Below, piece after piece: positions 12,272 to 27,100 of a DNA stretch of 64,000 nt. Positions within the stretch are counted from its first letter, which is position 1, and every line of letters starts with the position of its first letter. The notes beneath the pieces were generated by a model, which worked only from the letters and a program-made list of their open reading frames with translations, was not told where the DNA came from and did not search any database. This DNA comes from Dimorphilus gyrociliatus (taxonomy: Eukaryota; Animalia; Annelida), in the NCBI GenBank assembly GCA_904063045.1, contig CAJFCJ010000022.1:248001-312000 (forward strand). Direction: 5' to 3'. The position numbers and the translations under genes were made by a program.

Positions 12272-13864
12272 TCATTTCCGATCATTGCCTTCAACATCTT
12301 GCACTGATTTATTCGACGTTTCTTTTTTGCCCCTGAGCTTATCGTATTGAAGAGTCGTTGAAATCATATAATCGTCTACAATCTTCTTTATTTTCAATTT
12401 TTCGTACAAGTGTTCCAATCTGCGTCTATGAATATTCGGATAGAAACCCCTAAATATCCTTTCCGACAAAATAGGGCCCCAATTCTTTATTAATGATAAT
12501 AGAAAAATAATGGCTAATAAGACAACAATCTTCTTGCCGTTGAACGAAAGATGCCGTTGATTATCGTCGTAATAGGATAAACTGGGTATTTGAATATCAT
12601 CTAGGCACTTGACCTTGTATTTTGAATCGAATATAAAAATGTTTGGTTCGCTGAAAGGTTTACCTATACCTTGTCTATAGAGATTACTTAAATTTGCAGG
12701 CATTGCATCAAAATTTGTAAAAGTTATATTTCCTTTTCCGTAGGCCCTAATCGTAATCTTTCCATTCTTAAAAAGGCTCTTAGTTAGGGCATGTAGGCAA
12801 GTTTCTCCGAGAAAGCAGGCTATAACTAAAAAGCTTAACGTAATAGAAAAGAGAACATTAAGGAAAATTGTTGTTATATCACCAAATGAATTTACAAGGG
12901 ACCTAAAACCAATCTTGATTTTGTAGACTCCAATCTCATTAGCCTTTTTCCTAACAGAATAACCGCTTTCTGCTTCCATTTCCTCATCGTAATCCTTAAA
13001 ATCAGCGTACATATACCTATTATTATATCCAACATCCGTTTTGTATTTATATAGGCTAATAAAGTTTGTTATAAGTAGATGACCTAATAGAATGTACATT
13101 AATATTTGAATATAATCGTTTATAGTATCGACAAAGGTTGAAGAATCTTTAATCCTTTTGCTAGTTTGATTGAATATTTTAAAGACATCTAAACCTAAAA
13201 TATTAACTGTTGGTTTAGATGTAAATTGAATTTTAGGACAAGTTGAATTTTCCATATTGAAATATTTATCACAACTATCATATCCAAAGCATAAATTTGA
13301 ATTTGTAAAATCAGGTTTATTTCCGGCTATAACATCTCCTAATTCTTCTCTAGCCTTTTTATAGGCTTCATTAACTGTACCACCAATATCTAATACTGTA
13401 AATATACTATTACAAAAGTTCTTTTCAAAAGGCTTTGTTTTTTGAACGAATGAGTTTGCAATATTAAAAAGTTCGGCTTTCAAGTACGTTGTTAAATGGT
13501 TAATTTCACACTTAATAGTGTTGGAGAGAGTTTGCACATGTAGCGTTATTTTTCTTATTGGATTATTTAACAGCAATTCTAGAAGAATAATTGAGAGTAT
13601 TAACGTACCCTCACTTGTAATAAAGGCGGCGGCACTCATACAAATAAACGTTCTTACGATTTTGCAGAAGATTCCACATAGAATGAGAATAAAAGCAATT
13701 GTTAAGAAAATGGCTGTCTTTTCCAAAGAGATTTCAAACTTCTTTATATTATTAATGTTAAAAAAGCTCCAATCATTATTTAGTACTAAGAATAGTGTAC
13801 TAAAATAAACAATGAATAGAACCGAGTACAATATTGAGTGAGAAAACGACGTTATTCTTTCCAT
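12272..13864 (-). CDS. DC-STAMP-domain multipass membrane protein (DCST/Sneaky/SPE-42/DC-STAMP family), 530 aa, intronless CDS
   Basis: N-terminal TMs then FCKIVRTFICM..EG..I..NPIRKI..V..L..TIKC; Cys-containing ectodomain; YKTD..YNNRYM..DFKDYD (family 'Y..D..FDN.YI..F..D'); late TMs; IFRGFYP..RRRLEHLYEKL (family 'FYP..R...LY..L'). ATG 13864 follows an acceptor-like GATAG. Confidence 0.78.
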   Translation of the reverse strand: MERITSFSHSILYSVLFIVYFSTLFLVLNNDWSFFNINNIKKFEISLEKTAIFLTIAFILILCGIFCKIVRTFICMSAAAFITSEGTLILSIILLELLLNNPIRKITLHVQTLSNTIKCEINHLTTYLKAELFNIANSFVQKTKPFEKNFCNSIFTVLDIGGTVNEAYKKAREELGDVIAGNKPDFTNSNLCFGYDSCDKYFNMENSTCPKIQFTSKPTVNILGLDVFKIFNQTSKRIKDSSTFVDTINDYIQILMYILLGHLLITNFISLYKYKTDVGYNNRYMYADFKDYDEEMEAESGYSVRKKANEIGVYKIKIGFRSLVNSFGDITTIFLNVLFSITLSFLVIACFLGETCLHALTKSLFKNGKITIRAYGKGNITFTNFDAMPANLSNLYRQGIGKPFSEPNIFIFDSKYKVKCLDDIQIPSLSYYDDNQRHLSFNGKKIVVLLAIIFLLSLIKNWGPILSERIFRGFYPNIHRRRLEHLYEKLKIKKIVDDYMISTTLQYDKLRGKKETSNKSVQDVEGNDRK

Positions 13865-14029
13865 TTTCCCTATCAGCAAAAATCAAGAAATGACAAACTT
13901 TTTACAACTTTGCCTAGTCGAGATAATTGAATAATAACAAATAAATACGTTAAATATTATGATTGGCTATGGTTCATTTTTTTAGCACGAAATACATTAA
14001 TTTGTCAATTATTCTCCCTCATATATTTG

Positions 14030-14260: not shown

Positions 14261-15302
14261 TCAAAGCCGTACTCATTCTTTCACTGATTTATTCGCTAAC
14301 TCACGTTATCCCTCTCTTTACACCGGCTCTTTCTCTCTGTCTCTCTTATTTCCATTCTCATCAATATTTATTTATATAAACTATATATACTGTATAAATA
14401 GATGTATGTATAGTGGTTTTATTGACGACCAAAGATATTTACTTTGATTTCTTTTACCAATAAAAGATTTGTTATTGTAGTATTTTTTGAAACTCATTTT
14501 TATACGAATTAGGGAAACTATCCCTAGAATTCCCTATGTTTATTTATAAGTTTTCGCTATTTGCAATATACGATATATATATATAAATTTATATATGAAT
14601 TTATATATATATATATATATGTATATATTGGTATTTATCTCCTTTACATGCAATAAATCAGCACCGGAATAGGGCTATTTAACCAAGTTAATATATATAT
14701 AAACTTTTAAATGGGCCATTCAAACTGATATCGTATGAGCTACCAGCTACGTAGAATATTCAAATTCCTTCTTATCGTCGAAAACCAGTTGGAAAATTAC
14801 CTTCTTCCCATTTGCGACATTCCCCGATATAGCCATTTGACATTTTCACCATCAAAGATATAAAGCAGTGATAAGTAAATGGATTTCTTTTTGTTCTTTC
14901 TTTTCACCAATTCCATAAACATTCTATTGTTTTTCCTTATTTTCTTTCTACGCCAACCCGTTCCAACTACCAGTCCTCATCCTTCCGATAGAATAATAAG
15001 GCCTATTAAAGGCTTGTTGAACAAAACTTAATAAGAGCCGTTAGCCGGACTTGTAAATTGCATTTCTCCTTAATTAAGCTGCTAGCCTAAAGTATTGAAA
15101 GCTAGAGGCTGTTGTTTCTTCGCGATAATAACGATATTAGTAAATAACAAAACAGAATGAGAAAATAGGAAGTTTATAAAATTTTTCTCTTTTTTTTTGT
15201 ACAATAAACTTTTCTTTAAAACTTTAATTTTGTTTCTTTTTACAACAAAAACTGTGCAGATACTTTAAGCATAATTTTTATACTATTAATCTTTAAAAAA
15301 CC

Positions 15303-18300
15303 CTACAGAGAAGCCATACTGTCTTTTTCACCGAAATCCGTTTCCGTTTCTGTCGTCAAGCCTCCTTTACCCTTCAATTTTACTCTCTCAGCATCTGTCG
15401 TATTACCAGCGTCGCTGCCTGCGAAAAAATTCAATTATAGCAAGCGATTGGTGGCGGAAATTAACGAATATACGACGAACCGGTTGCACTAAAATGATTA
15501 GGGAAATTGGTGGTTGTATTTGACGATTTCTTGTAAGTTGTAGAATTCATTGTTAATTTTCTAACATTCTTCTCCGGATGAAAAATGATTATGTAAATCT
15601 TAGGAGTAAAGAGGCAGAGAAGAGCCACATAAGCGCTCAAAGAAATTGAGACGCAAAGCGTTGTTGTCTGAATCTGTTGAACGAATGTAAACAAGTTTTT
15701 TTTATAAAATAAGTATATCGCATGAATCTAGAGCAACTAGCAGAAGTTTTTCAATCAAATTAGGTCATCTCCGGCTACAAAGAAATAATAGACTATATCT
15801 ATATAATAGTGACAAAGAACCATAGTTAGAAACATCTGGATAGAGATGCGGGTCGTCCATCAATTTTTAGTATGTTTATTCATTTAGGGTATATAGTATT
15901 TTTTTAATAAAAGAGTCGATATTAAAGGATGACGTTTGTACCTGAATAAATAAAATGCTTATAAAAACAAAAGCGGGCTGAAGAGAATAAGCATCAGTGA
16001 GGAATAGAAGATCAAAAAATTGTTAAAATTGCACAAATGGTCAAGTTGAAATATCCACGTTACAATTGATTAATTAATTAATAAAAGGAGAAAGATAATA
16101 AATAAAGAAGTTGTCTACGCGCCATCTATAGGTCTCTTACCTGAAAATTATTCAAGGTTCCAAAATAAATAGGAAGAAAGGCCAACCAAATAATACAGGT
16201 GGTATACATAGTAAATCCTATGAATTTACTCTCGTTAAAATTCTCGGGAATTTTTCGTGTCTTTATAGCATAGACTGTACAAATGAGAATGAGTAGCATA
16301 TTGTATGTAAGCGAGATGAGGAAAGAAGTCTCTTCGATCCGGCACTTGAGTATCACCTCATTCTTTCTTCCACCCGGATTATAATGCCTTATCCCTGGAG
16401 GACTGACGAACAGCCAAACTCCTGCACACGCTATCTGGATGCCGATAAGGATTAAAGTGATTATCAGCTGGGATTTTGGAGATATGAATGGAGGTCTTTT
16501 AGCTGATTTTGTGGCGCTATCGAAGATTCTCGATATTCTATTGGTTTTTACAAGGAGTGACGAGTACATGACTGCAAAAGCGAAGCCGACTCCAAACCTC
16601 CTTATTGTGCATATAACGGCTGTAGGCTTAGCCAAGAGGAAGAATGTCATGAGGAAGTTACAGATGAAACCGCCCAGGAGAACAAAACTGAGTTCCCTAC
16701 CCGATGCTTTAACAATCGGAGTATCAATGTGTAAGAAGAAGGTGACGGCTACAAGGGATGTTAAGGTAATACCTAGGCAAGAGATGGCAACTGGAACCAG
16801 GGAATATACAGACAGCCACCTCATATGTTGTACCCATGAACGAAAGAATACATTGTTTGCGGTAAGTCTTTGATGACAAAGTCCATACTTAAAATTGACC
16901 GCCCATTATGAATTAGTGCTCTATATGGCAACAGCATGCAGTGATTATTTGGAATATCACAATAGAAAATCGTTTATATAAATTATTCACTAGATCTTTC
17001 AATTGACCTTTCGCTTAGTGCGAGAAAATTCCTTCTATATTGCTATCGTTCTTGTCAGATTTAGGAATAAATTTTTCACGTCATTAGTCTCACTGTTCTC
17101 TCGCTAATCGATTGACACCTAATTATGAGGTGTGCGTACTTGTGATTGTACCATGAAACCTTAAAAATTTAGTCTACTTTTACAATAACGTATAGCCTGT
17201 CTAGTCTGTCTGTATGGCACTATGTTATTGAGTATATTTATATATTCTTATTCGTTCGTTCATGAGCTATTACCGGAAGATCGTAGCATGAACTCTTTTC
17301 TTCATTAGGCCATCTACCTTCACCGCAATCTTCGCACGTTACTTCGTCCACAGTATATTCGAAATCTTTGCAAGGTGTGCAAATCCAACAGCAAGAACGA
17401 TCTCTCATTCTTTTAATTTCTCCTACCTTGCAAGGTGGGGAACATATACTTACGGGAACTTCAACGCGTCCGTCTAGCCATCGTATGTCGTCTTTTCTAA
17501 TAGTAAGTCCGTTCGTCCATTCTCCAACAGCTACGTATTCGTACTTATCGGTTTCTGTGTTTCGACGGTAATTCATAACGTTGTATCGTCCAAGACCATC
17601 GCCAGAGGCATCGAATTCGATTACGTCTCCAAAACGATCTGTAAGGAATTCGATTTTTTAGAGCTTTAACAGACTATTTCTGATAGGTTTTTCTGCTTGA
17701 CGGGTCAGGTGACGCTCTCTTCAGGGACGCCCACGTCTGTCAATATTTCTATTAGCATTTTTTTTATCAGTTGATACTCTCGCATTATCGAAAGAAAGTG
17801 AAAAAAGGGGAAAGATAGAAGTGGAAAAAAAATATTTTCTTTTGTAGTAAATCGAGTATTTTGCACAGTTTATTAAAGGTTGAAAATTTTCCTTTTTTCC
17901 TACAAAAACTAAAGGAAAACAAAAAGAAGTCTATAATGATAAAGCTAATAATATATCTTTTTTTCATGTTGTTGATAACCTTTCAAAGACCAAAAAAGCT
18001 ATTCGATATGTAAAGCGTATCTAAGTGGATATTTAAAAGGAATAAATCAAAAAGAGATACTTTTCCGGTGACAACTCAAAGGCAAAAATCATCTTTAATG
18101 CATACAATTTATTTAATAAATAAATGAAAAGTGTAGTCTAATTTTATTCATTTTCACGCTACTTAGATCACGATACAGGTGAGTGGACTACCGTGAAATT
18201 CATCAATGGCAGTATTTTAGATTCTATTCCTTGTTTTCTTTTCTTCTCATTTTCTTTTCTCTAACCTTACTTTTTCTTTGTTTCTTTCTTTATTTCTTTA

Positions 18301-21300
18301 TTCTCTATTTGCTCTTTCTATCAACTATTTATACTAGTCTGAACTGAGGGTATCGAATGAAAAATGGGGAAATTAAGGTATTTAAAAAGTTAGTAAAAGA
18401 GAAAAAAAGCAAAGATTGTATGTAATTTGCTGTTTTTAGAGAGACCCTTAGAAAAATAGATTACGTATCTGTACAATATATATTCTTAGACGTATATGGA
18501 TATTTGGATATACAGCAGTGTAGTTTTTCTTTTAGTCTCTTATTTTCCATATATATATTAGTATATAGATATATACTCGATTTAATTCTATTTTGTCAAC
18601 TCATCAACTATGGCTAGGGTCGAGAGTTACAGTTACGAAATGAAAGGTGGCGACAGTCTTCTATGGAAGCCAAATAATTTACTTGTAAAGTCGCCATATG
18701 AAAGGAAAGAAAGGTGCATCTTACTGTCTTTACTCCCTATTTATAAATAATTAGTTATTGTTCTACAAAACGTTAAGTATACATATATACGTCTATATAC
18801 TATATATAGACGTTAGCGTTGAGGGAAGAGGGCTACAAAGAAAACAAAAAGCAAAAGAAGAGAGAGCGAGAGAGAGAGAGAGAGAGAGAGAGTTGTAAAC
18901 TGAGAATAGAGAAAATAAAGAGTATAAAATTTTGAATATATCTCTAGGGGAGAGGAGAGAGAGAAGGAAGATTTGAGGTTTTAAGATTATCGCTAAATAT
19001 TTTGGTTGTCTAATCTAATAATATTTTCTTTTACTTTCGCTGCATTAATACGAAGATTTCGGTGGATAAAAGTATTATTTTTACAGACGACAAAGTATTT
19101 TGTATAACAATTTACAGTAATATACAAACTTTAGCCCCTTTTCTTTTCAGTTAAAAAGTTCGAATGTAAATATTGAAGCTATTAAACGAAAACACACTAA
19201 ATGGCTGATGCTGAGAAAAGAGCATTTGTGATAAATTGTTTGTAGAATGGAAAACCGTTTTTTGATTAAAAGATATCCATATATGTATAATTTTTTTCCA
19301 ATTTTCTAAACACTAAAAAGTATAGCTTTTTCACTCTTTTGTGTTTCGTTTTTCTATACAACTGCCGAGAATTTTTATGGAATTTACAAAGAAAATAAAA
19401 AGATAAAGAAACGAAGCAGATTACAAGCATAGAATATACGTTAATTCAATAATTAAGGAATGTTTGTTAAAAGGGAATGAATAAACAAAATGTTTATTAA
19501 ATTCAAGATGTTTATTGAATTGATTAGGATTTGAAAAAAGTGCTATTAGATTTTTTTTAGAGCTATTAAATACCACTTGACTATCTTACTTTTGCTAAAG
19601 TTGTTTCTTCAATTTGAACAAGAATTTAGCATTCGAAATTGCCTACCCACGTGACATGGTTTAGAAACACCCGCGGGTTACAATCTAAATTTCGAATTTC
19701 CTGCAATCTAACGGAATTCTCCTACTTTAATTCTCACGTGAGCTTTCTCCTATTAAGAGCTCGAAATAAAACACATTTTCGTAAACGCTCAGCTGTTAAT
19801 CTTCCGATCTAAATGTGAAAAGAAGGGAATTTATGTGAAATGAATACTGGTTTCTTAAGTCAATTTCCAGTTCAAATTTTAAATATAAGAATTTGCACTT
19901 GTTAATGATTATTTCCTTCTGCTACTCTCTATTATTTTTCTCCTATTAAGAAATTACTAGCTTTATCCGACCATGAAACAAGTATGCAATTTAAAATAGC
20001 TTTGGCACACTGCTGTATGATTAGAGACTTATGGAGTGATGTTAGTGCAATGGATGCCTGAATTTACCTGTTTAAATTAGCTTAGTGATAAATAATATAC
20101 CTTGTTTTGTATTAATAAAGAGAAAATTTCATGCATCTTTAATTAACTCTAAATTATGATAAAAATCAATAATAATAATAAAAAAACATAGGATTTTTTC
20201 TATGTTTCTTTTTATATATTTCAATAATAACGAAACTAAACTCTATTGACGCCTGTTCTGTCAGTCTGTCTGTCTGTCTGTCTATCTTTCTTTCTTTCCG
20301 TCTGTCTATCAGTCTCCCTTTCTCCCTTCCTCTCCCTCTCTCTCTCTTCGCTATTTTTTCTATCCCCACCCTCTCTTTCTTTTTATATTGAAACAACTTT
20401 GAATCATTACTGAAATGAGAAATTTTCATTCGCAGTTATTCCTGTCCTCTTTGGTCTATTAACAGCGCGGTGAATTGACTTATTAACGATGCATCCAATT
20501 TATCTCGTTAGAGAGTAGTTGGCAAAGAAAAATTACTTAATTCCTCAAACTCTTAAAGTGGAAAAATACTCAATAAATTTTCTTTAATAGAGTTTGATGA
20601 CTAAATTAGGCAATATGATAAATAGTTACTTGATATAACTTGACAAAATGTATTTATTTAACCCATAACCCTCTCTACAAAGAGTTGATAAGAAGATACT
20701 ATACAGTTCGGGTGTTGGCTGTTCTGCTATGTTTACAGCAAAGTGGAAGCCTCAGGCCAGTTCATTTGCATCGATGATGGACCATTGTAACATTTTTTTT
20801 TCAGCCTTTCGCTGAATGTTAGAATTAATACATGAGTATTTTGATTAAATTATAAATGTAACATAAAAAAGAAATCTTTTAGGGTAAATAAGCAAACTTA
20901 TATGATTTATAAAAAATTAGACAGCATACTGTATAGTGTATTACAGTATAACTTATTAATTCACTTAGTATACGTATATATCTGCTTTAGTTTGTCAACG
21001 TTTACCTTTTCTTTTAGTTTCTTAAGTTAAAGAGACAGAGAGAGAGAGAGAGAGAGTGATTAAGGTAGAAAGGTAAGAGAGAGACAGAAAAATCAGAGTT
21101 GAAAAAATTTTTCCTTTCTTTTCTTTTTGAAAAGAAACTTAAAAGAAGAAATATAAATAGAAAGAGGATAATAATAAAAAGAAAATAAACATATGTATCA
21201 TTTTTTCTTCTTAAAAAAGAGAATTATATATCAAAATATAGTTATAAAAGTAGGTATCGACCATATATATATATATATATTTATATTGGTAAACAAATAT

Positions 21301-24300
21301 ATACACAGTTGCAGCGAATTTTCTATCTGATCCGCCATAGTTTTTAAGCTGTCTATTCCTTAGAATATCTATTCTTCCCATCCTCTCTCTTGCCTATCCT
21401 CGCTCCTTCTTTCCCCTTTCTTATTATTTCTTATTTACCTTAAAGAAAATGGTTCTGCCTTTCTTGCCTTTAATTTGTTAAATTATCTAATTAGTTTTTA
21501 TCATTTTTCTCTTTTTTCCCTTCAAAAAGTTAACGTAAGAGAGAAGATAGGAAAATGTTTAAATGATAAATAAACATGCACATAATATACATATATGCAT
21601 TGATTTAACCACATATATATATATAAATGTGAAGAATACCGCAAAGCTCCAGTATCCCATTCCCGAGCGCTATGATTTAGATACATCTTCGTAGCGTTAA
21701 GAAATGGAACACCCGAACTGCGATTATTCCATATCGCCTATAAAATTCTATATTAAAAAAATATTTCCCTTATTTTTTATTCTCTAAGGTTTTCATAATA
21801 ACTTTTCTCCTTGTTCTTTTCACTGTTTCTCTTATAATTGTTACAACCTACCGCTCGTCTTTTCTCTCCCCTTCTCTTCTCTTTCCTTTTCTGTTTTTTT
21901 TTCTCATAATCCTTTCTTCATATACTTCAAGTTTTGTTATTTTCAAACTACTGGACTATATTCATTCGTGTTTTATTTTATTTTTAATAAATTCTTATAA
22001 AATATTAGATAATTTAATAAAAGACTTACAAAGCTTAATATAAGGCGGTGAATTATTTATCCTTACCTCAGGCAAAATTAATATCGAGACAAAAATTACA
22101 GCCATTTAGCGCTACCCTTTTTTTCTTTCTTTTTTTTAATGAAAAAAAAAGACGCCAAAGAGTCTTTTGGCGTCTTTCTCGCTCTCTCTCTCTCTTCTTT
22201 TTTTTCAGTGTTAAAGCTTGGTAGATTTTTATTTTTATTTATTTTTATAGTTGAATGTTTAGATATTATTTTACTCATTAATTTCATTTTGCTCAATTAG
22301 ATAAATACAGTTAAAATAATTGTGAATGTAAAATTTAAAGCTTATTTAACTGTTCGTTTAATTATTTATAAATCCAGATTATTGATGGATAATAAAAAAA
22401 ATAAGTATGTAGAAACAGTATTCAAGAGTTTGTTATCCTCTATCATTTTTCAACTACCCATCCTCCTATCCCCCTATCCCCCTATCATCCATCCATTCGT
22501 CTATGCATCTATTCATTCCACACCAAGCTATACGTATTCAAATGCGGTACAATTTGTATTTTGATAAATAGTGAATACTGGACAGAAGGAGGAGGGAGGA
22601 GGCGAGAGAGAGTGATGAGCGAGAAAAGGGGAGAAGAGTAGTAAGGAAAGTAATGCTCGCGAGATATTTTACTCCATTATTTTACTCCATTAAAAAAGCG
22701 TAAAATATATTACTGTAAATTGTCCTATTCAAAAGTAAATGACACAGGTAAAGGCCATGTGACTAAACAAAAATGAATTTTTTACGGGAAAAATGCCAAT
22801 CATTGTCTTGTTTGCTCTTAGCCTTCTTACATATTTAAGTCAGGCTAAGACGCATATCATCTCTATTGACAAATCTTTAACTAAACTGATGGATATAGTT
22901 TTGCTATTTATCTGCATATTCCGATTCATAAAAAGTAAATAATATTGTTTAGAATGTGTTGAAAGACTCAATGGAGGTACAAAATCAATTTTTAGCCTAT
23001 TCGGTTACAAACTATTGATAGACAAAGAGTGGATGATTAATTTTTTGATTTTGATTTTTCCTTTTACGCTTGTTTGAATAGCTTGCCAATGATATATAGA
23101 AATAAAATATAGTTATAGTTAAACTATAGTATGACAGTAAATCTGAATGACTTTGTATAATATAAGCAGTTGACAAAATTTATACAAAAGATTCATCTTC
23201 CCTCAATGTTCCTTGTTTTCTTATATATATATATAAATGTGTATAAGCTGATTATCTTAATTAGTTAACTTGGATAAAGTCTGTCAGTATTTTGAGGCAG
23301 AAAGACAGATGGATAGAGAAATAAAGAGAATGAAGGAAAGAGAGAAAGAAGGAAGAGTAAATTTTAACAGATGAAAAAAAAAATAATATAAAAACAAGGA
23401 GGAAAAAAGAAGAAGAAGAAAAAAAAGTTGGAGATATAAACGATATATTGAACATGTCAAGAATAGAGCAATTATTCATACAATTCCTTTGTTAAGGTAA
23501 TACATCAATTCTGTATATCTTTGTTGTTTTTTTACGATAAATTAATCGCCGACTTTATGAGAGAATGAAAATGTAAATTAATATTTCTCTCCTCTTCCAA
23601 TCGAAATGGATACAATAGGTAGAATGGATAAGAATATAAACTAAATGCATAAAAAGAAAACGTTACTCACCTTCAAAGGAAACGTTCAGTAGATAATGTT
23701 TATAAAATGTCTTTCCATCTCTTAAAAATTCACTCATACACGTCTTCCTATCGTCGTTCAACCAACATTGCTCTTCTAGAACTTTATTTAAGGCTTGAGC
23801 AACAGCATACACTGTATCGTACACAAACTGTAATTTACTTTCCTGTTTGAAGTCTGGAAATGTCTCGTTTCCAGTACAGAGAGAACCATTTTCTTTTGGT
23901 TTGAATTTACATTTGTGAGCTGATTCCCAGAATTCGTTAAACCAAGGATTTCTGGTGTTATTCGAGGGTCGTCTCCTCCTAAAATACGTGTCAAAATCTG
24001 GAATTTTCTTCGATTTCAACTCTATGGTTATAGCTCCTCTAGAAACGTTAGTTGTGTCTTTAACGGGTAGAGGATTGTTTCCCCAACCGTCCGATGCGAT
24101 CCAAACGAAAGAATCGATCATGTTGAGACGTTGGGCAGCTGATAGAAGTTGAGTAGCATCTTCAACTCTAAGAAAGAGGGCGACAACTCTAGCTTCATTA
24201 TTTTTAAGTTCTTTAACAATCTTTTCAAAATTTTGCTTATTGGACGACTGAGGAACCTTTGCTTCTATAGCCGTACAAACATTCCTGGCGGTTAATTCGT

Positions 24301-24918
24301 CTTTAAAAGCCTCTATTCCTTTTTCACCATAGTCTCCCTCGGAAGCTACTGTACTGACGTACGTCCAATTGAAAAAGTCGACAATGTCAGCCATCGCTCT
24401 TGCCTGAAAGTTATCAGGCGGAACTGTTCTCGCAAAATAGTCAAATCTAGTTTTATCACTTAAAACTGCTGATGTTGACGCATAGGAAACTAGAGGTATT
24501 TTAAAAAGCCTTAATAGATTAGCCACCTGGATCGTGGACGAAAGTAATAATATAGTCCAGCCTAAACAACTGAATGGAATGGGGCGTATAGGCCACATTA
24601 CTTAATAAAAGAACAAAGTACATACAATTTCTATCACATTGGTTAGTCCCAATTAAGTTCCATATATATTTGCTTAAAGGAAAAGCTTCCTTACTAAGTC
24701 ACCTCTTTATTTATTGGATATGAAATTTATATCCGGTGAACCAATTATTCTTCTCTACGTTAAAAACGCTGCCAATTTTCACTATTAACTACATTTATAG
24801 TTGTAAATACAAATTATTGTTAAGAAATACGTAGAATGCAATTTATATCTTTTGTATATTTCTCATTTCTTATATTTAATCTTACTCGCTGACTCTCTTT
24901 CTCTCTGTCTCTCTGTCT

Positions 24919-24951
<33 letters not shown>

Positions 24952-25626
24952 ACTTTCTTTTCTCTTGCTCTTTCTCTCTCTCATCTCTTCCCTTCACTTC
25001 TGTTCTCTTAACCCCTAACCATATATATCTCTCCTTCCCTCTTCCCTTCTTGCTCTTTACTTTTCTTTCTTTCTCTTTTTTTCTTTTTATGTAAAAGTAC
25101 AATAAACAGGAAAAGAATAACAACGAAATATTTGTTCAATTAGACCTAATTACGATAACTGATTAATATATACATTCAGTATATATATATAGATTATTTA
25201 TAGTAGTATATTTTATTTTCTTTCGTTCACGACCTGAATGGATACGCTGCTATAACTTCCTCCAATTACTGCAGCAACTGGCTGAGCATCCGACTGCCCG
25301 CAAGAGAAAGAGCGCATTGAAGCTCTTATAAAGTCCATTGACTGTTCCACAGCATAAGTATCTCTGGAGCAGGTGTCTATTATCCTAGCGCCCAAAGTTA
25401 TGTTCGGCAGTAAGTCCTGCTTGTTATTGATCTCTTCCAGAGTAAAGAACATGGCCTCTAGGCGCTGTATGCCTCGTTCTCCCTGAATAGGTCCGCACGG
25501 TGTCCCCGGGTTATCGCTCTTCTTATGAACCGGGAACAGGCCTCCTAAGAAAATATCTCCAGGCAGGTTGGCGATTTGCTGTTGTCCAAGCACCATGCAG
25601 ATTTGCAGGACGAGGAAGAGAAGCAT
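15303..25626 (-). CDS. GRM: Metabotropic glutamate receptor, group II/III (DmGluRA/GRM2-3)-like, 871 aa
   Basis: complement(join(15303..15418,15481..15673,16141..16833,17274..17638,23671..24526,25234..25626)), 2616 nt. Signal peptide; Venus flytrap with glutamate-contact motifs [51 protein letters not shown]; Cys-rich domain; 7TM ([57 protein letters not shown]). The acceptor at 16833 is non-canonical (see findings). Confidence 0.96.
18859..18892. repeat. (AG)n microsatellite in mGluR intron 2
   Basis: Near-perfect GA dinucleotide run. Confidence 0.9.
24895..24980. repeat. (CT)n microsatellite in mGluR intron 1
   Basis: CT dinucleotide run; source of spurious ORF 24852..25094. Confidence 0.9.
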
Positions 25627-27100
25627 TGACGGTCTTTATTCTTTGCCTATCGATGATCAATGTCGGATTTTTTCGTGTTTTTTGTTTTCGTTTATAGAAC
25701 CGGGAAATGTAAATTGATTAGACGTCGGAAGATCCGCTTGATTCCCTACATCGTCTCCGGAAACTGACTATTTCTATAGTATATTTAGTTATTTTATTTT
25801 AATCTTAATTTCATTAATCGGCTTAAAAGTAAACTTTGCCTTTACAGGGCAATAGTATCTTTTTGATTTTAATACCCATTTGTTTTTGTTCAAATGGATA
25901 AAAGAGATAAATTGATTATTTCTCAGCCAAGATTGTTTTACCTCATCGTCTTGAGGAGAGAGACATTAATTGTTAGGGACCTATATTCTATTAATTACAA
26001 TCTCAGGGGGTTCTTTTCCCCTTTTGCCATTATTTATATACATATTATTTTCCTTTTCTCTACTTTTCATACACCAAAAATGAAAAAGCTAATTTGATCT
26101 ACTTCCGCAAATGTTTTCAAACTTTTTTCCCGCCAAGAACATCAAATATAGAGTAAAAGAGAAGAAGAAAAAACACGTAGCTATCCTTTTTTATTTTTAT
26201 TATTAGTTAATTTAAAAAGAGAAAGTTTGTTTTGTTTTTACTCCTTCGAGAAAAGGCAAAAAGTTCTTCGCTCTGCCTCTCTTGCTCTTATTCTCTTGAT
26301 TTGTCCTTTGCGAATGAGATAAAGTAATTGATTGGCGGACTCTGCTTGTTTTCTACATAGTCTTCCGGAGAGACGGTTCGTTAGACACCTATATTAATTA
26401 TTAGCTTCGTCGTCTCCAAACTAACGCTTAATTTAGACGCGTTTCGAGACCTTATGGTCGTTAGAAGCCCAACGAAGATATTCTAACTGACTAGTTTATA
26501 AATGAGAGAATGACGAGGAACTATAACAAGAAATGTTTAATGTTCCGCGGCTAGAGAACACTCACTTTTGCAGTTTACTCTGTCAATATCTTATTCGACT
26601 CGTACTGCAAATATTGTATAGAAAAAAGTACCAGATGCGGCCTGCTCTACACATGTACACAATTAATGTCTATTCGTAATTAACACGCGAATTATATGAT
26701 AGGAAATATCTTACCTCCGTCAAAGAAAAGCGATAAAAGACGCCTGCGTCTCTGTAGACGGCGCTTTTTTTCGGAATTTCAACAGATCCTTTTCTCTTTC
26801 TCCCGCTCTCCGAGATAATCGATTGGTAAACTATCGAAGATTATCTTAGGCCAAATTTCGATCGTAAAGCGGTTAAGGTGGTAATTTCTTTAATTAATTC
26901 CGATCTCCCCAGTGACGTCCTAAAAGAGACGACGGCTGAATATTCGCAGCAGTCTTCAAGTTTTAATCATTTCTCTCCTTTTATTCCTCTTATTATTCTT
27001 TAAGTTTACGGTTAGCTGCCAACCGCCTTCTCCCTGCGTTCAGATGAACGTCCGCCCGGTAGACGGAGCTTCTGGCATAATAATAATTCGAATTATAATG
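25627..27100 (-). promoter_or_regulatory. Probable mGluR 5' UTR exon(s) and promoter
   Basis: CpG-richer island upstream of the ATG; minus-strand donor GGAG|GTAAGA at 26715/26714; TGACGT (CRE half-site) near 26913; ATTGG/CCAAT near 26822. TSS not determinable. Confidence 0.45.

Follow-up and report, generated by a model that had tools for sequence, protein, structure and literature searches.

In zebrafish, introns bridged by (AC)m–(GT)n repeats at their ends do without U2AF2, as demonstrated by experiment (Lin et al., 2016; PMC4691745). Two introns of a predicted metabotropic glutamate receptor (mGluR) gene of the annelid Dimorphilus gyrociliatus, located in the 64,000-nucleotide stretch of DNA that was analysed (the window), resemble this class: complementary low-complexity arms occupy opposite boundaries of one spliceosomal intron in an animal, the bridge enforces, or in our case would enforce, pairing of the intron's own 5′ and 3′ splice sites, and the 3′ arm replaces the normal pyrimidine tract. 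Like bridged introns, mGluR introns 1 and 3 have complementary ends within the same intron and a bridge in the whole-intron fold, whereas the AC/GT dinucleotide repeat of the zebrafish class is absent from their arms, which have a GAAN-like sequence. The zebrafish arms are plain dinucleotide repeats found in thousands of introns, while the mGluR arms are a specific sequence of 13–15 nt confined to this gene; and the zebrafish introns are canonical at both ends, unlike mGluR intron 3, which ends in GG and whose clamp is a predicted one.

Pairing between the 5′ splice site and the branchpoint region has been reported in yeast (Goguel and Rosbash, 1993; Libri, 1995; Charpentier and Rosbash, 1996; as cited in PMC4691745). 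As summarised there, such intra-intron pairing brings the distant sites of long introns effectively closer and makes splicing better, a likeness to what we propose here; the yeast downstream arm precedes the branchpoint, whereas the mGluR arm is downstream of the likely branchpoint and extends up to or past the 3′ splice site. The docking and selector sequences of Dscam1, in the description given in PMC4691745, are alike in that a single sequence has complements at several other splice sites within one pre-mRNA. That description has an array of mutually exclusive exons, whereas the mGluR gene has no such array, no isoforms were seen in its RNA contigs, and the arms of introns 1 and 3 have a partner in the same intron.

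The nonconventional and intermediate introns of euglenids (PMC4770533; PMC3935182) also have a stem joining the intron ends and adjoining exon ends, one or two non-canonical borders, direct repeats that blur the cut and a short stem motif common to different introns. By this comparison intron 3 resembles an 'intermediate/nonconventional' subtype (conventional at the 5′ end only) and intron 1 a 'conventional/intermediate' one; non-canonical borders together with an end-joining stem are found in intron 3 only. The euglenid signature pairs (+4 to +6 with −8 to −6, mostly CAG/CTG) are absent from the mGluR introns: positions +4 to +6 of intron 3 are ATA and unpaired, and those of intron 1 (GTG) pair with −10 to −8 (CAC). 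Euglenid intron positions are young and lineage-specific and their removal is thought to be non-spliceosomal, in contrast to the old positions and GT donors of the mGluR introns. In larvacean tunicates splicing is non-canonical, and most Fritillaria introns are non-canonical (PMC13326754); there, as here, an animal spliceosome accepts introns that break the GT/AG rule, but tolerance in Fritillaria is ascribed to a changed U2AF and to snRNA modification, whereas the mGluR case concerns single introns with a clamp.

Structure of the mGluR gene and the borders of intron 3

The gene lies on the minus strand and has six exons, which when joined and translated to check frame and phases give one frame of 871 codons. 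Judged by homology, the product is a group-II-like metabotropic glutamate receptor (class C GPCR): the domain order ANF_receptor, NCD3G, 7tm_3 is present (precomputed Pfam hits on exon-wise homologues), and the best named matches of the receptor homologues are 'metabotropic glutamate receptor 2/3'. The features are as follows.

Exon 1, 25234..25626, minus strand: ATG at 25626, signal peptide and first part of the ligand-binding domain; phase-0 end
Intron 1, 24527..25233, minus strand: 707 nt, GT..AG, weak donor GTCGTG
Exon 2, 23671..24526, minus strand: ANF_receptor domain (PF01094); ends in phase 1
Intron 2, 17639..23670, minus strand: 6032 nt, strong GTGAGT..ACAG sites; end pairing absent (−8.0 kcal/mol)
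Exon 3, 17274..17638, minus strand: end of the ligand-binding domain and the cysteine-rich NCD3G domain
Intron 3, 16834..17273, minus strand: 440 nt, donor GTAATA, GT..GG with a non-canonical 3′ end
Exon 4, 16141..16833, minus strand: 7tm_3 domain (PF00003), with the greater part of the seven-helix bundle; phase-0 end
Intron 4, 15674..16140, minus strand: 467 nt, GTAAGA..ACAG; end pairing absent (−9.2 kcal/mol); joint in runs X1 and X2
Exon 5, 15481..15673, minus strand: final transmembrane helix and first part of the tail; phase-1 end
Intron 5, 15419..15480, minus strand: 62 nt, GT..AG; joint in X1 and X2 (cut +1); end pairing −3.9 kcal/mol
Exon 6, coding part, 15303..15418, minus strand: runs to a TAG stop

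The intron phases (0,1,0,0,1 from intron 1 to 5) and the in-frame summed length of exons 2 and 3 (1221 nt) were as given in the initial annotation. The junction of exon 1 with intron 1 was placed by homology and GT-AG, and the exon's end at residue ...SVSIQ is common to the homologue L015 and to L017 of a related lineage. The join of exons 2 and 3 was confirmed by a contig loose end at 17640; exon 3, which ends in phase 0 at ...YDLP, is supported by RNA contigs, and PF07562 was found on the relative's ORF. Exons 1–5 align to L015, the closest homologue (65% identical), which has the same structure and intron positions but short GT-AG introns without end pairing. Since they are shared with this homologue, the positions of introns 1 and 3 are old; the position of intron 3 is absent from the nearest paralogues in this genome (L003 and L005). 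A public protein record that is 100% identical to part of exon 2 has only 243 residues, and the gene appears to be annotated in pieces in public records, which the reading of intron 3 set out below would account for.

The acceptor of intron 3 is GG instead of AG and is truly used. The intron is excised exactly as modelled, its 440-nt gap being joint in contigs of both X1 and X2 (contig depth figures were left out as measures). A 4-nt repeat (GGTA) makes the cut ambiguous and leaves five equivalent cuts, all of them non-canonical, with GT..GG as the likeliest borders. Three other AGs, at −54, at −34 and 14 nt into exon 4, are skipped over in the RNA contigs; use of the last as acceptor was thus rejected, as was use of a cryptic in-frame AG at 16889-16888 (18 extra residues), likewise unused in contigs. 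An assembly or base error was dismissed given that X2 contigs match the window exactly and that the related lineage also has GG. Reverse-transcriptase template switching across the stem, at the GGTA repeat, is unlikely because the join restores the conserved frame exactly in two libraries and because exon 4 is under strong purifying selection in both lineages. The end sequences do not fit a U12-type intron. A contig with intron 3 unspliced was assembled in X2 beside the spliced form.

Complementary arms at the ends of introns 1 and 3

The initial annotation had reported a motif near donors and its complement near acceptors, and the coordinates and letters of all its copies were correct. The motif TGAACGAA lies at +5 to +12 of intron 1 (25229-25222) and +12 to +19 of intron 3 (17262-17255); its complement lies at the 3′ ends of intron 3 (16837-16844) and intron 4 (15678-15685), with a one-mismatch copy at the 3′ end of intron 1. 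The arms, and the lone copy, are as follows.

Intron 1 5′ arm, 25220..25234, minus strand: exon −1 to +14, G|GTCGTGAACGAAAG, covering the 5′ splice site
Intron 1 3′ arm, 24530..24544, minus strand: −18 to −4, CTTTCGTCCACGATC, with one A.C mismatch to the 5′ arm
Intron 3 5′ arm, 17250..17264, minus strand: +10 to +24, CATGAACGAACGAAT
Intron 3 3′ arm, 16835..16849, minus strand: −16 to −2, ATTCTTTCGTTCATG, also the intron's only pyrimidine-rich tract
Lone complement copy, 15678..15685, minus strand: TTCGTTCA in the RNA sense, 4 nt before the intron 4 acceptor

The four arms form one sequence family, with 0, 1, 1 and 2 mismatches to CATGAACGAAAG, and read as degenerate GAAN or NTTC tetramers. Orientation is constant, the motif itself being on the donor side and the complement on the acceptor side. 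No partner for the acceptor copy TTCGTTCA was found within intron 4.

The 8-mer occurs 8 times in the window against 2.76 expected, a count reached in 0 of 100 shuffles, and 4 of these copies are at intron ends, where about 0.004 were expected in ten 25-nt windows (roughly 1000 times expectation). The other four, which lie outside the gene, are background: a coding ORF contains two of them and purine-rich spacer the other two. Across the genome the 15-mer was found only at the donors of introns 1 and 3; the 12-mer count was 30 against 27 for the control, and there were no other clustered pairs. The matching motifs at the intron ends are not due to chance.

Introns 1 and 3 each carry both arms and hence can each close on themselves. 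The intron 1 arms form 12 of 13 pairs (duplex energy −17.7 kcal/mol) and those of intron 3 are complementary at 14 of 15 positions (−18.7 kcal/mol), compared with end-pairing energies of −3.3 to −12.6 kcal/mol in 11 control introns (three in this gene, four in L015 and four in paralogues). In pseudo splice-site windows of this sequence, a single pair reached −17.7 with P = 0.003–0.005, and at least two of five same-intron pairs reached this strength in 8 of 10,000 simulated sets (P = 8e-4). These values bear on a null hypothesis already proposed for the motif, by which degenerate (GAAN)n sequence near donors meets (NTTC)n pyrimidine tracts near acceptors by chance. All arms can indeed be read as such tetramers, and purine and pyrimidine microsatellites abound in the genome; however, the null windows were drawn from the same microsatellite-rich sequence, pyrimidine-rich acceptors included, and the value of about 8e-4 for two same-intron pairs, the excess of the 8-mer at intron ends and the conservation of the arms in a diverged lineage make pure chance extremely improbable. 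The (GAAN)n repeat and pyrimidine tracts may nonetheless have supplied the sequence from which the arms arose.

The closing stem is present in both the minimum free energy and the centroid structures of whole intron 1 and whole intron 3; in intron 3 the predicted stem reaches +7 on the 5′ side and crosses the 3′ junction into exon 4 (+1, +2). Whole-intron folding energies are unremarkable (z = −1.6 for intron 1 and −0.5 for intron 3). The stems coincide with weak sites, and introns 2 and 4, with GTGAGT and GTAAGA donors, have none. Generic inverted-repeat scans of the window were swamped by (TA)n or gave no more than a small surplus of inverted repeats (23 inverted, 18 mirror and 16 direct). 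A mirtron or structured RNA gene was rejected, the introns being far too long for a mirtron and Rfam giving zero matches in 15300-25700.

We consider it probable that the motifs serve as the paired strands of intron-closing stems, which give structure-assisted splicing of two long, weakly marked introns. The arms would pair within one intron and loop out its interior, so that the foot of the helix would bring the 5′ and 3′ splice sites of that intron together; in intron 3, where the helix would span the 3′ junction, the cut would be set at GG, with the donor only some 6 unpaired bases away. Median intron length in D. gyrociliatus is 66 bp and its splicing is adapted to short introns (PMC7854359); in an animal tuned to introns of about 66 nt, such a clamp would make a long intron behave like a short one and would compensate for poor or absent consensus signals, with the chemistry assumed to be carried out by the spliceosome. 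With this model we infer both that the arms pair in vivo and that splicing depends on the pairing.

Conservation of the arms in a related lineage

In the related lineage exons 1–4 are under purifying selection, with 18–43% of third codon positions differing; the exon 4 protein is 96% identical and 56 of its 69 nucleotide differences fall at third codon positions. Against this divergence all four arms are retained, as are the GT..GG borders of intron 3 and the A.C mismatch of intron 1. The 5′ arm of intron 1 is identical; on its 3′ side the arm CTTTCGTCCACGA (−18 to −6) and −5 are identical, with the mismatch retained, while the splice-site bases have changed from TCCAG to TTTAG (altering −4 and −3) and 2 nt are inserted just upstream. 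The last 17 nt of intron 3 are identical, and the sole arm change is in its 5′ arm, C to T at +16, where the pair stays (C-G to U.G). Intron lengths differ (707 nt here against 772 nt in the relative for intron 1; 440 against 588 nt for intron 3), arm flanks and intron interiors have changed, and only 10–17% of intron windows of arm length are conserved as well as the arms. The 5′ end of intron 4 diverges directly after GTAAGA; the relative's locus (L014) ends inside this intron, and a search with exon 5 matched only distant species. The last 80 nt of intron 2, which hold no arms, show only 2 changes between the lineages; conserved blocks inside the long introns of the gene may be regulatory.

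Covariation between the two lineages amounts to zero double compensatory changes and the one pair-preserving C-to-U. Arms conserved in this manner could also be single-stranded sites for splicing factors, or inhibitory structures that slow splicing for regulation by intron retention. Such a role would accommodate the masking by the stems of the donor of intron 1 and the pyrimidine tract of intron 3, the unspliced contig that stands alongside the spliced form in X2, and the lack of a partner for the motif at the intron 4 acceptor. The occurrence of both the motif and its exact complement, always in donor-sense and acceptor-antisense orientation, fits pairing instead of one protein site; moreover the motif has no genome-wide enrichment, both runs contain the spliced form and strong purifying selection acts on the protein. 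On balance we hold a role as protein sites or retention structures to be decidedly unlikely.

The arms might alternatively be the terminal inverted repeats of a small element inserted in both introns, or the product of local copying, with no role in splicing. Protists and tunicates are known to have introns that derive from transposons and end in inverted repeats (PMC4770533; PMC13326754). The four arms plainly belong to one sequence family, and short direct repeats flank both introns (GGTA for intron 3 and CAGGT for intron 1), although such letters are also commonplace at splice junctions. Introns 1 and 3 each occur once in the genome, intron 1 apart from a (GA)n tract, so that the many related copies of an introner or MITE are absent; together with motif counts at control level (the 15-mer at these two donors only and the 12-mer at 30 against 27), this excludes a dispersed repeat. 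Furthermore, introns 1 and 3 share no sequence beyond the arms, both positions are old as judged from the 65%-identical homologue, the arms are intact across a divergence that scrambled the interiors, and the intron 1 arm begins at +2, leaving no space for an older intron around an insertion. A mobile relic or local copy is therefore unlikely. The intron-closing stems, for their part, are compared in two lineages only, where conservation could reflect a sequence motif instead of pairing.

Predicted pairing within and between introns

Either donor arm (intron 1 or intron 3) is able to pair with each acceptor arm, whether of intron 1, 3 or 4, at −8.1 to −20.6 kcal/mol, and the intron 4 copy pairs on paper with the donor arms of intron 3 (−14.5 kcal/mol) and intron 1 (−12.7 kcal/mol). 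The initial annotation had stressed one cross-intron helix, between the intron 1 donor and the intron 3 acceptor, and proposed a docking/selector system that switches isoforms. That helix exists on paper, with 15 uninterrupted pairs, and the complementarity of the motifs stood; the emphasis on the cross-intron pair did not, since introns 1 and 3 each hold both arms. Likewise, non-random complementary RNA arms at splice sites were upheld and are conserved in the relative, for which reasons RNA pairing that bears on splicing is likely, while the isoform switch was not sustained.

In such a system the shared arms would be docking and selector sites, and competing helices, in which the intron 1 donor meets the acceptor of intron 3 or intron 4 and the intron 3 donor that of intron 4, would join non-adjacent phase-0 sites to give in-frame exon-skipped receptors. 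Its attraction is that the most stable single duplex is the cross-intron one (−20.6 kcal/mol), with the relative's A-to-G at intron 1 +16 retaining a pair of this helix as G.U, and that one motif is common to the arms of two introns and to the intron 4 acceptor, a sharing that a pure same-intron clamp does not need; nor does intron 4 offer its copy a partner. Every motif-bearing intron (1, 3 and 4) is also phase 0, but this alone has a chance of 1 in 10. The best of 25 duplexes reaches −20.6 in 2.75% of simulated genes, so the cross helix alone is weak evidence, and the two same-intron pairs together (−36.4 kcal/mol) match or exceed in stability the best cross arrangement (−35.1 kcal/mol); the same-intron stems appear in the minimum free energy and centroid whole-intron folds.

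The nearer partner of each donor arm would moreover be transcribed minutes before the far one, with the 6 kb intron 2 intervening. The gene has six constitutive exons and no cluster of alternative or mutually exclusive ones, and exon-skipped products would have a truncated ligand-binding domain. In contigs of X1 and X2, from which rare forms drop out, only neighbour joins were seen over 14900-17900: the predicted 17274-to-15673 join was absent, there was no foreign loose end at 16833, and contigs spanning exons 3–6 held no exon-skipping joins, at low sensitivity. Docking/selector sites of this kind are thus very improbable. We are just as doubtful of a true selector code in the reused sequence, which stands at both ends of introns 1 and 3 and at the acceptor of intron 4; under such a code introns would usually self-close, and blocked or delayed pairing would let the donor arm of intron 1 or 3 capture a downstream acceptor.

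Intron-closing clamps are the reading that we favour, but two further points count against it. The intron 1 stem buries the GU donor, and that of intron 3 buries its sole pyrimidine tract, so that pairing could inhibit splicing; X2 does contain the unspliced intron 3 contig. In addition, any complementary pair would serve as a clamp, and the use in four arms plus a fifth half-site of one motif, which elsewhere in the genome is at chance level, is not accounted for by clamping.

If the clamps work as proposed, the gene would provide a compact natural test of RNA structure replacing consensus splice signals in an animal: the donor of one long intron is very poor, another intron has no AG yet is cut to the base, and this arrangement has been kept across a deep lineage split. 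Should a selector code prove true, a helix rather than AG would direct the spliceosome's cut and in-frame exon-skipped receptors would result; the arm sequence common to these introns leaves room for such cross-talk between introns. Gene finders restricted to GT-AG will break genes like this mGluR. Working clamps would also show how long introns may persist in a genome adapted to very short ones.

Gene structure and complementary arms at the intron ends

The mGluR gene was modelled by hand as six exons on the minus strand:

25626-25234, minus strand, exon 1
24526-23671, minus strand, exon 2
17638-17274, minus strand, exon 3
16833-16141, minus strand, exon 4
15673-15481, minus strand, exon 5
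15418 to the stop codon at 15305-15303, minus strand, exon 6

The joined exons form a single open frame of 871 codons with intron phases of 0, 1, 0, 0 and 1 (introns 1-5), the intron 1 junction being a putative one placed by homology. Searches exon by exon gave the domain order ANF_receptor, NCD3G, 7tm_3 and best named relatives described as 'metabotropic glutamate receptor 2/3'. A record of just 243 residues in the public protein databases (NCBI/UniRef) matches part of exon 2 (23671-24526; protein P0121) at 100% identity; public annotation therefore seems to split this gene into pieces, with the breaks plausibly falling at its weak and non-canonical introns.

The 8-mer TGAACGAA is present in eight copies in the window against 2.76 expected, a count reached in 0 of 100 shuffles of the window. 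Four copies lie at mGluR intron ends, sense after donors and antisense before acceptors (4 in ten 25-nt intron-end windows against about 0.004 expected); one of these four, a lone TTCGTTCA, lies four bases upstream of the intron 4 acceptor. The remaining four are background: two in a purine-rich spacer and two in a downstream coding ORF. This ORF (12272-13879, minus strand), a single exon of 535 codons, follows closely after the mGluR gene, and both of its copies of the 8-mer complement are coding; the protein read from its first ATG had no exact match in the protein collection.

The coordinates and sequences of the initial annotation were all correct on re-reading, and the uninterrupted helix of 15 pairs that it described between introns 1 and 3 is present. 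It had overlooked that each of these introns contains both arms. In intron 1, TCGTGAACGAAAG (+2 to +14 from the intron 5' end) faces CTTTCGTCCACGA (-18 to -6 from the 3' end) with 12 of 13 positions paired and one A.C mismatch; in intron 3, CATGAACGAACGAAT (+10 to +24) faces ATTCTTTCGTTCATG (-16 to -2) with 14 of 15 paired. End pairing was calculated as the duplex energy between the first and last 30 nt of an intron. Across the mGluR introns the presence of a stem tracks splice-signal strength, as detailed below.

Splice signals, stems and end pairing (duplex, kcal/mol)
Intron 1: donor GTCGTG (weak); stem present; -17.7
Intron 2: GTGAGT..ACAG (strong); stem absent; -8.0
Intron 3: donor GTAATA, 3' end GG (weak); stem present; -18.7
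Intron 4: GTAAGA..ACAG (strong); stem absent; -9.2
Intron 5: weak donor, only 62 nt; stem absent; -3.9
Eight other real introns, from the closest homologue and two paralogues: -3.3 to -12.6

As a null, pseudo donor and acceptor windows were drawn from the same microsatellite-rich window. A single pseudo-site pair was as stable as -17.7 kcal/mol with P = 0.003-0.005; at least two of five same-intron pairs reached this level in 1 of 1200 simulated genes, and at least three of 25 pairs in 2 of 1200. In 2.75% of simulated genes the most stable of the 25 pairs reached the level of the cross helix (-20.6 kcal/mol), which the initial annotation had called the cleanest; taken alone, this helix is weak evidence. 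In whole-intron folds of introns 1 and 3, the closing stem is predicted in both the MFE and centroid structures; the predicted stem includes the GU donor in intron 1 and runs from +7 through the 3' junction into exon 4 in intron 3.

The non-canonical 3' end of intron 3

Contigs from two RNA runs, a marine metatranscriptome from a slightly diverged strain (X1) and a 2017 run of the organism that is identical to the window (X2), were compared with the window over 14900-17900. Introns 4 and 5 appear as GT..AG joints. At intron 3 exactly 440 nt are skipped, restoring ...YDLP/VQHMRW... as in other mGluRs; the cut is ambiguous across 4 nt (GGTA), and none of the five equivalent readings (AT..TA, AA..GT, TA..GG, GT..GG and GG..TG) is canonical. 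An unspliced X2 contig spans intron 3 with the GG in place, which rules out an assembly error. An in-frame AG at -54, an AG at -34 and an AG 14 nt into exon 4 are all unused in the X1 and X2 contigs. The likely branch site is CTTAC, with its A at -30, upstream of the 3' arm. Since the first AG beyond this candidate is the unused one within exon 4, the cut would not be set by AG scanning, and the stem is the obvious candidate to set it instead.

One X2 joint omits 58 nt (15870-15927) whose GT..AG borders read on the plus strand, within intron 4 of the minus-strand gene; this could be an intron of an antisense transcript or a 58-nt length variant.

Conservation and origin of the arms

A related lineage was reached via a protein sharing 96% identity with exon 4; the genomic contigs of this lineage come from public Logan assemblies (exons 3-4 on L014; exons 1-2 on L017-L019). 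The two lineages are well separated: 18%-43% of third codon positions are different, and first and second positions change little; this bias indicates that all four exons (1-4) are translated in frame in both. Intron 1 of the related lineage is 772 nt long, with both arms and the A.C mismatch identical, TCCAG replaced by TTTAG in the stretch separating the 3' arm from the splice site, and 2 nt inserted immediately 5' of the arm. In intron 3, which measures 588 nt, GT..GG is kept and the last 17 nt are unchanged; a single change in the 5' arm, C to T at +16, converts a C-G pair to U.G. Outside the arm, the 5' half of this intron is unalignable, with a 147-nt indel. End pairing in this lineage is -20.2 (intron 1) and -17.9 kcal/mol (intron 3). 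As a control, introns 2 and 4 lose similarity at their 5' ends directly past the donor hexamer. Of intron windows of the length of the arms, only 10-17% are conserved as well as the arms. No double compensatory change was found in the arms between the two lineages.

Conservation extends beyond the arms. Blocks of ~190-260 nt, >90% identical to the related lineage, lie in the 3' halves of introns 3 (16850-17040) and 1 (24600-24860; both minus strand), the 5' halves of the two introns being scrambled; the 3' end of intron 2 is also highly conserved, without an arm, with only 2 changes in its last 80 nt (17639-17720). These regions may be regulatory elements, which would explain why introns 1 and 3 are long; a search of Rfam with the conserved intron blocks found no RNA family.

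A second homologue (L015/L016) encodes a 65% identical protein that is the reciprocal best match of the mGluR gene. Its introns occupy the same four positions, are 118-234 nt long and all GT..AG, and have end pairing at background. The positions are therefore old, and the derived condition is the long, weak, clamped one. L015 could be a paralogue that the D. gyrociliatus genome has lost or the orthologue of another species present in the same samples. Logan runs SRR23372228 and SRR23372229 each contain both the 90%-identical lineage (L014/L017) and this homologue, consistent with either mixed samples or a related lineage with a paralogue missing from this genome. Where the mGluR gene has intron 3, the short canonical intron of this homologue has AATGAGCGAAAT at +14 and, 12 nt later, a near-complement, AATTCGTCATT (L015:3303-3360); this local hairpin motif has three mismatches to the arm consensus and alone is not significant.

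Intron copy number and genome-wide arm counts argue against a mobile-element family as the source of the arms. Each of introns 1 and 3 occurs once in the genome, except for the (GA)n tract of intron 1, and no similarity between them was found beyond the arms. The degenerate 15-mer TCRTGAACGAAMGAA has two matches in 78 Mb, which are the intron 1 and 3 donors; the 12-mer CRTGRACGAAMG has 30 genomic matches, of which four fall within the mGluR gene, and its reversed control has 27; no second clustered pair was found elsewhere in the genome.

Genome contigs C1 (78-95 kb; 3.25-3.27 Mb), C9 (1.958-1.977 Mb), C5 (3.08 Mb), C16 and C23 carry at least 20 more class C receptor 7TM exons, several in tandem arrays. 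Many of these paralogues have the cysteine-rich and 7TM parts within one exon; intron positions thus vary among paralogues. One on C16 near 945 kb (L005:580-1100) has a 519-nt intron within the cysteine-rich domain that, with its boundary taken from homology, seems to start with GC (AG/GCATGAACAAATAAG); the sequence past this donor resembles the intron 3 arm (CATGAAC...AATAAGA), with end pairing of only -9.8 kcal/mol.

Proposed cross-intron switching and probable same-intron clamps

The initial annotation had proposed that the shared arms act as docking and selector sites, as in Dscam, giving exon-skipped mGluR isoforms. The four arms and the lone motif before the intron 4 acceptor do form one sequence family found at chance level elsewhere, and a common arm sequence between introns is not needed by a simple clamp model. 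However, every donor arm has a closer partner, which the polymerase reaches well before the distant one, and the same-intron arrangement sums to -36.4 kcal/mol versus -35.1 for the best cross arrangement. The gene also departs from Dscam in having no array of alternative exons and in its isoforms, as judged by the contigs over 14900-17900: the predicted 17274-to-15673 join was not found in X1 or X2, and the sole loose end is at 17640, the end of exon 2. As contigs hide rare forms, this is an absence of support for switching and not a disproof.

Same-intron clamps, as modelled here, most likely aid removal of the long mGluR introns 1 and 3. A clamp would place both splice sites of an intron at the foot of one helix and could offset poor splice signals, the absent AG included. 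The closest known system is the zebrafish class of introns bridged by (AC)m-(GT)n, in which the sites of one intron are made to pair with each other and U2AF2 is dispensable (PMC4691745); yeast pairing between the 5' site and the branchpoint is related. Euglenid intermediate introns have a similar architecture, although their signature pairs and intron age do not fit those of the mGluR gene (PMC4770533). In D. gyrociliatus, where the median intron is 66 bp and splicing is reported as adapted to short introns (PMC7854359), a clamped long intron would act as a short one.
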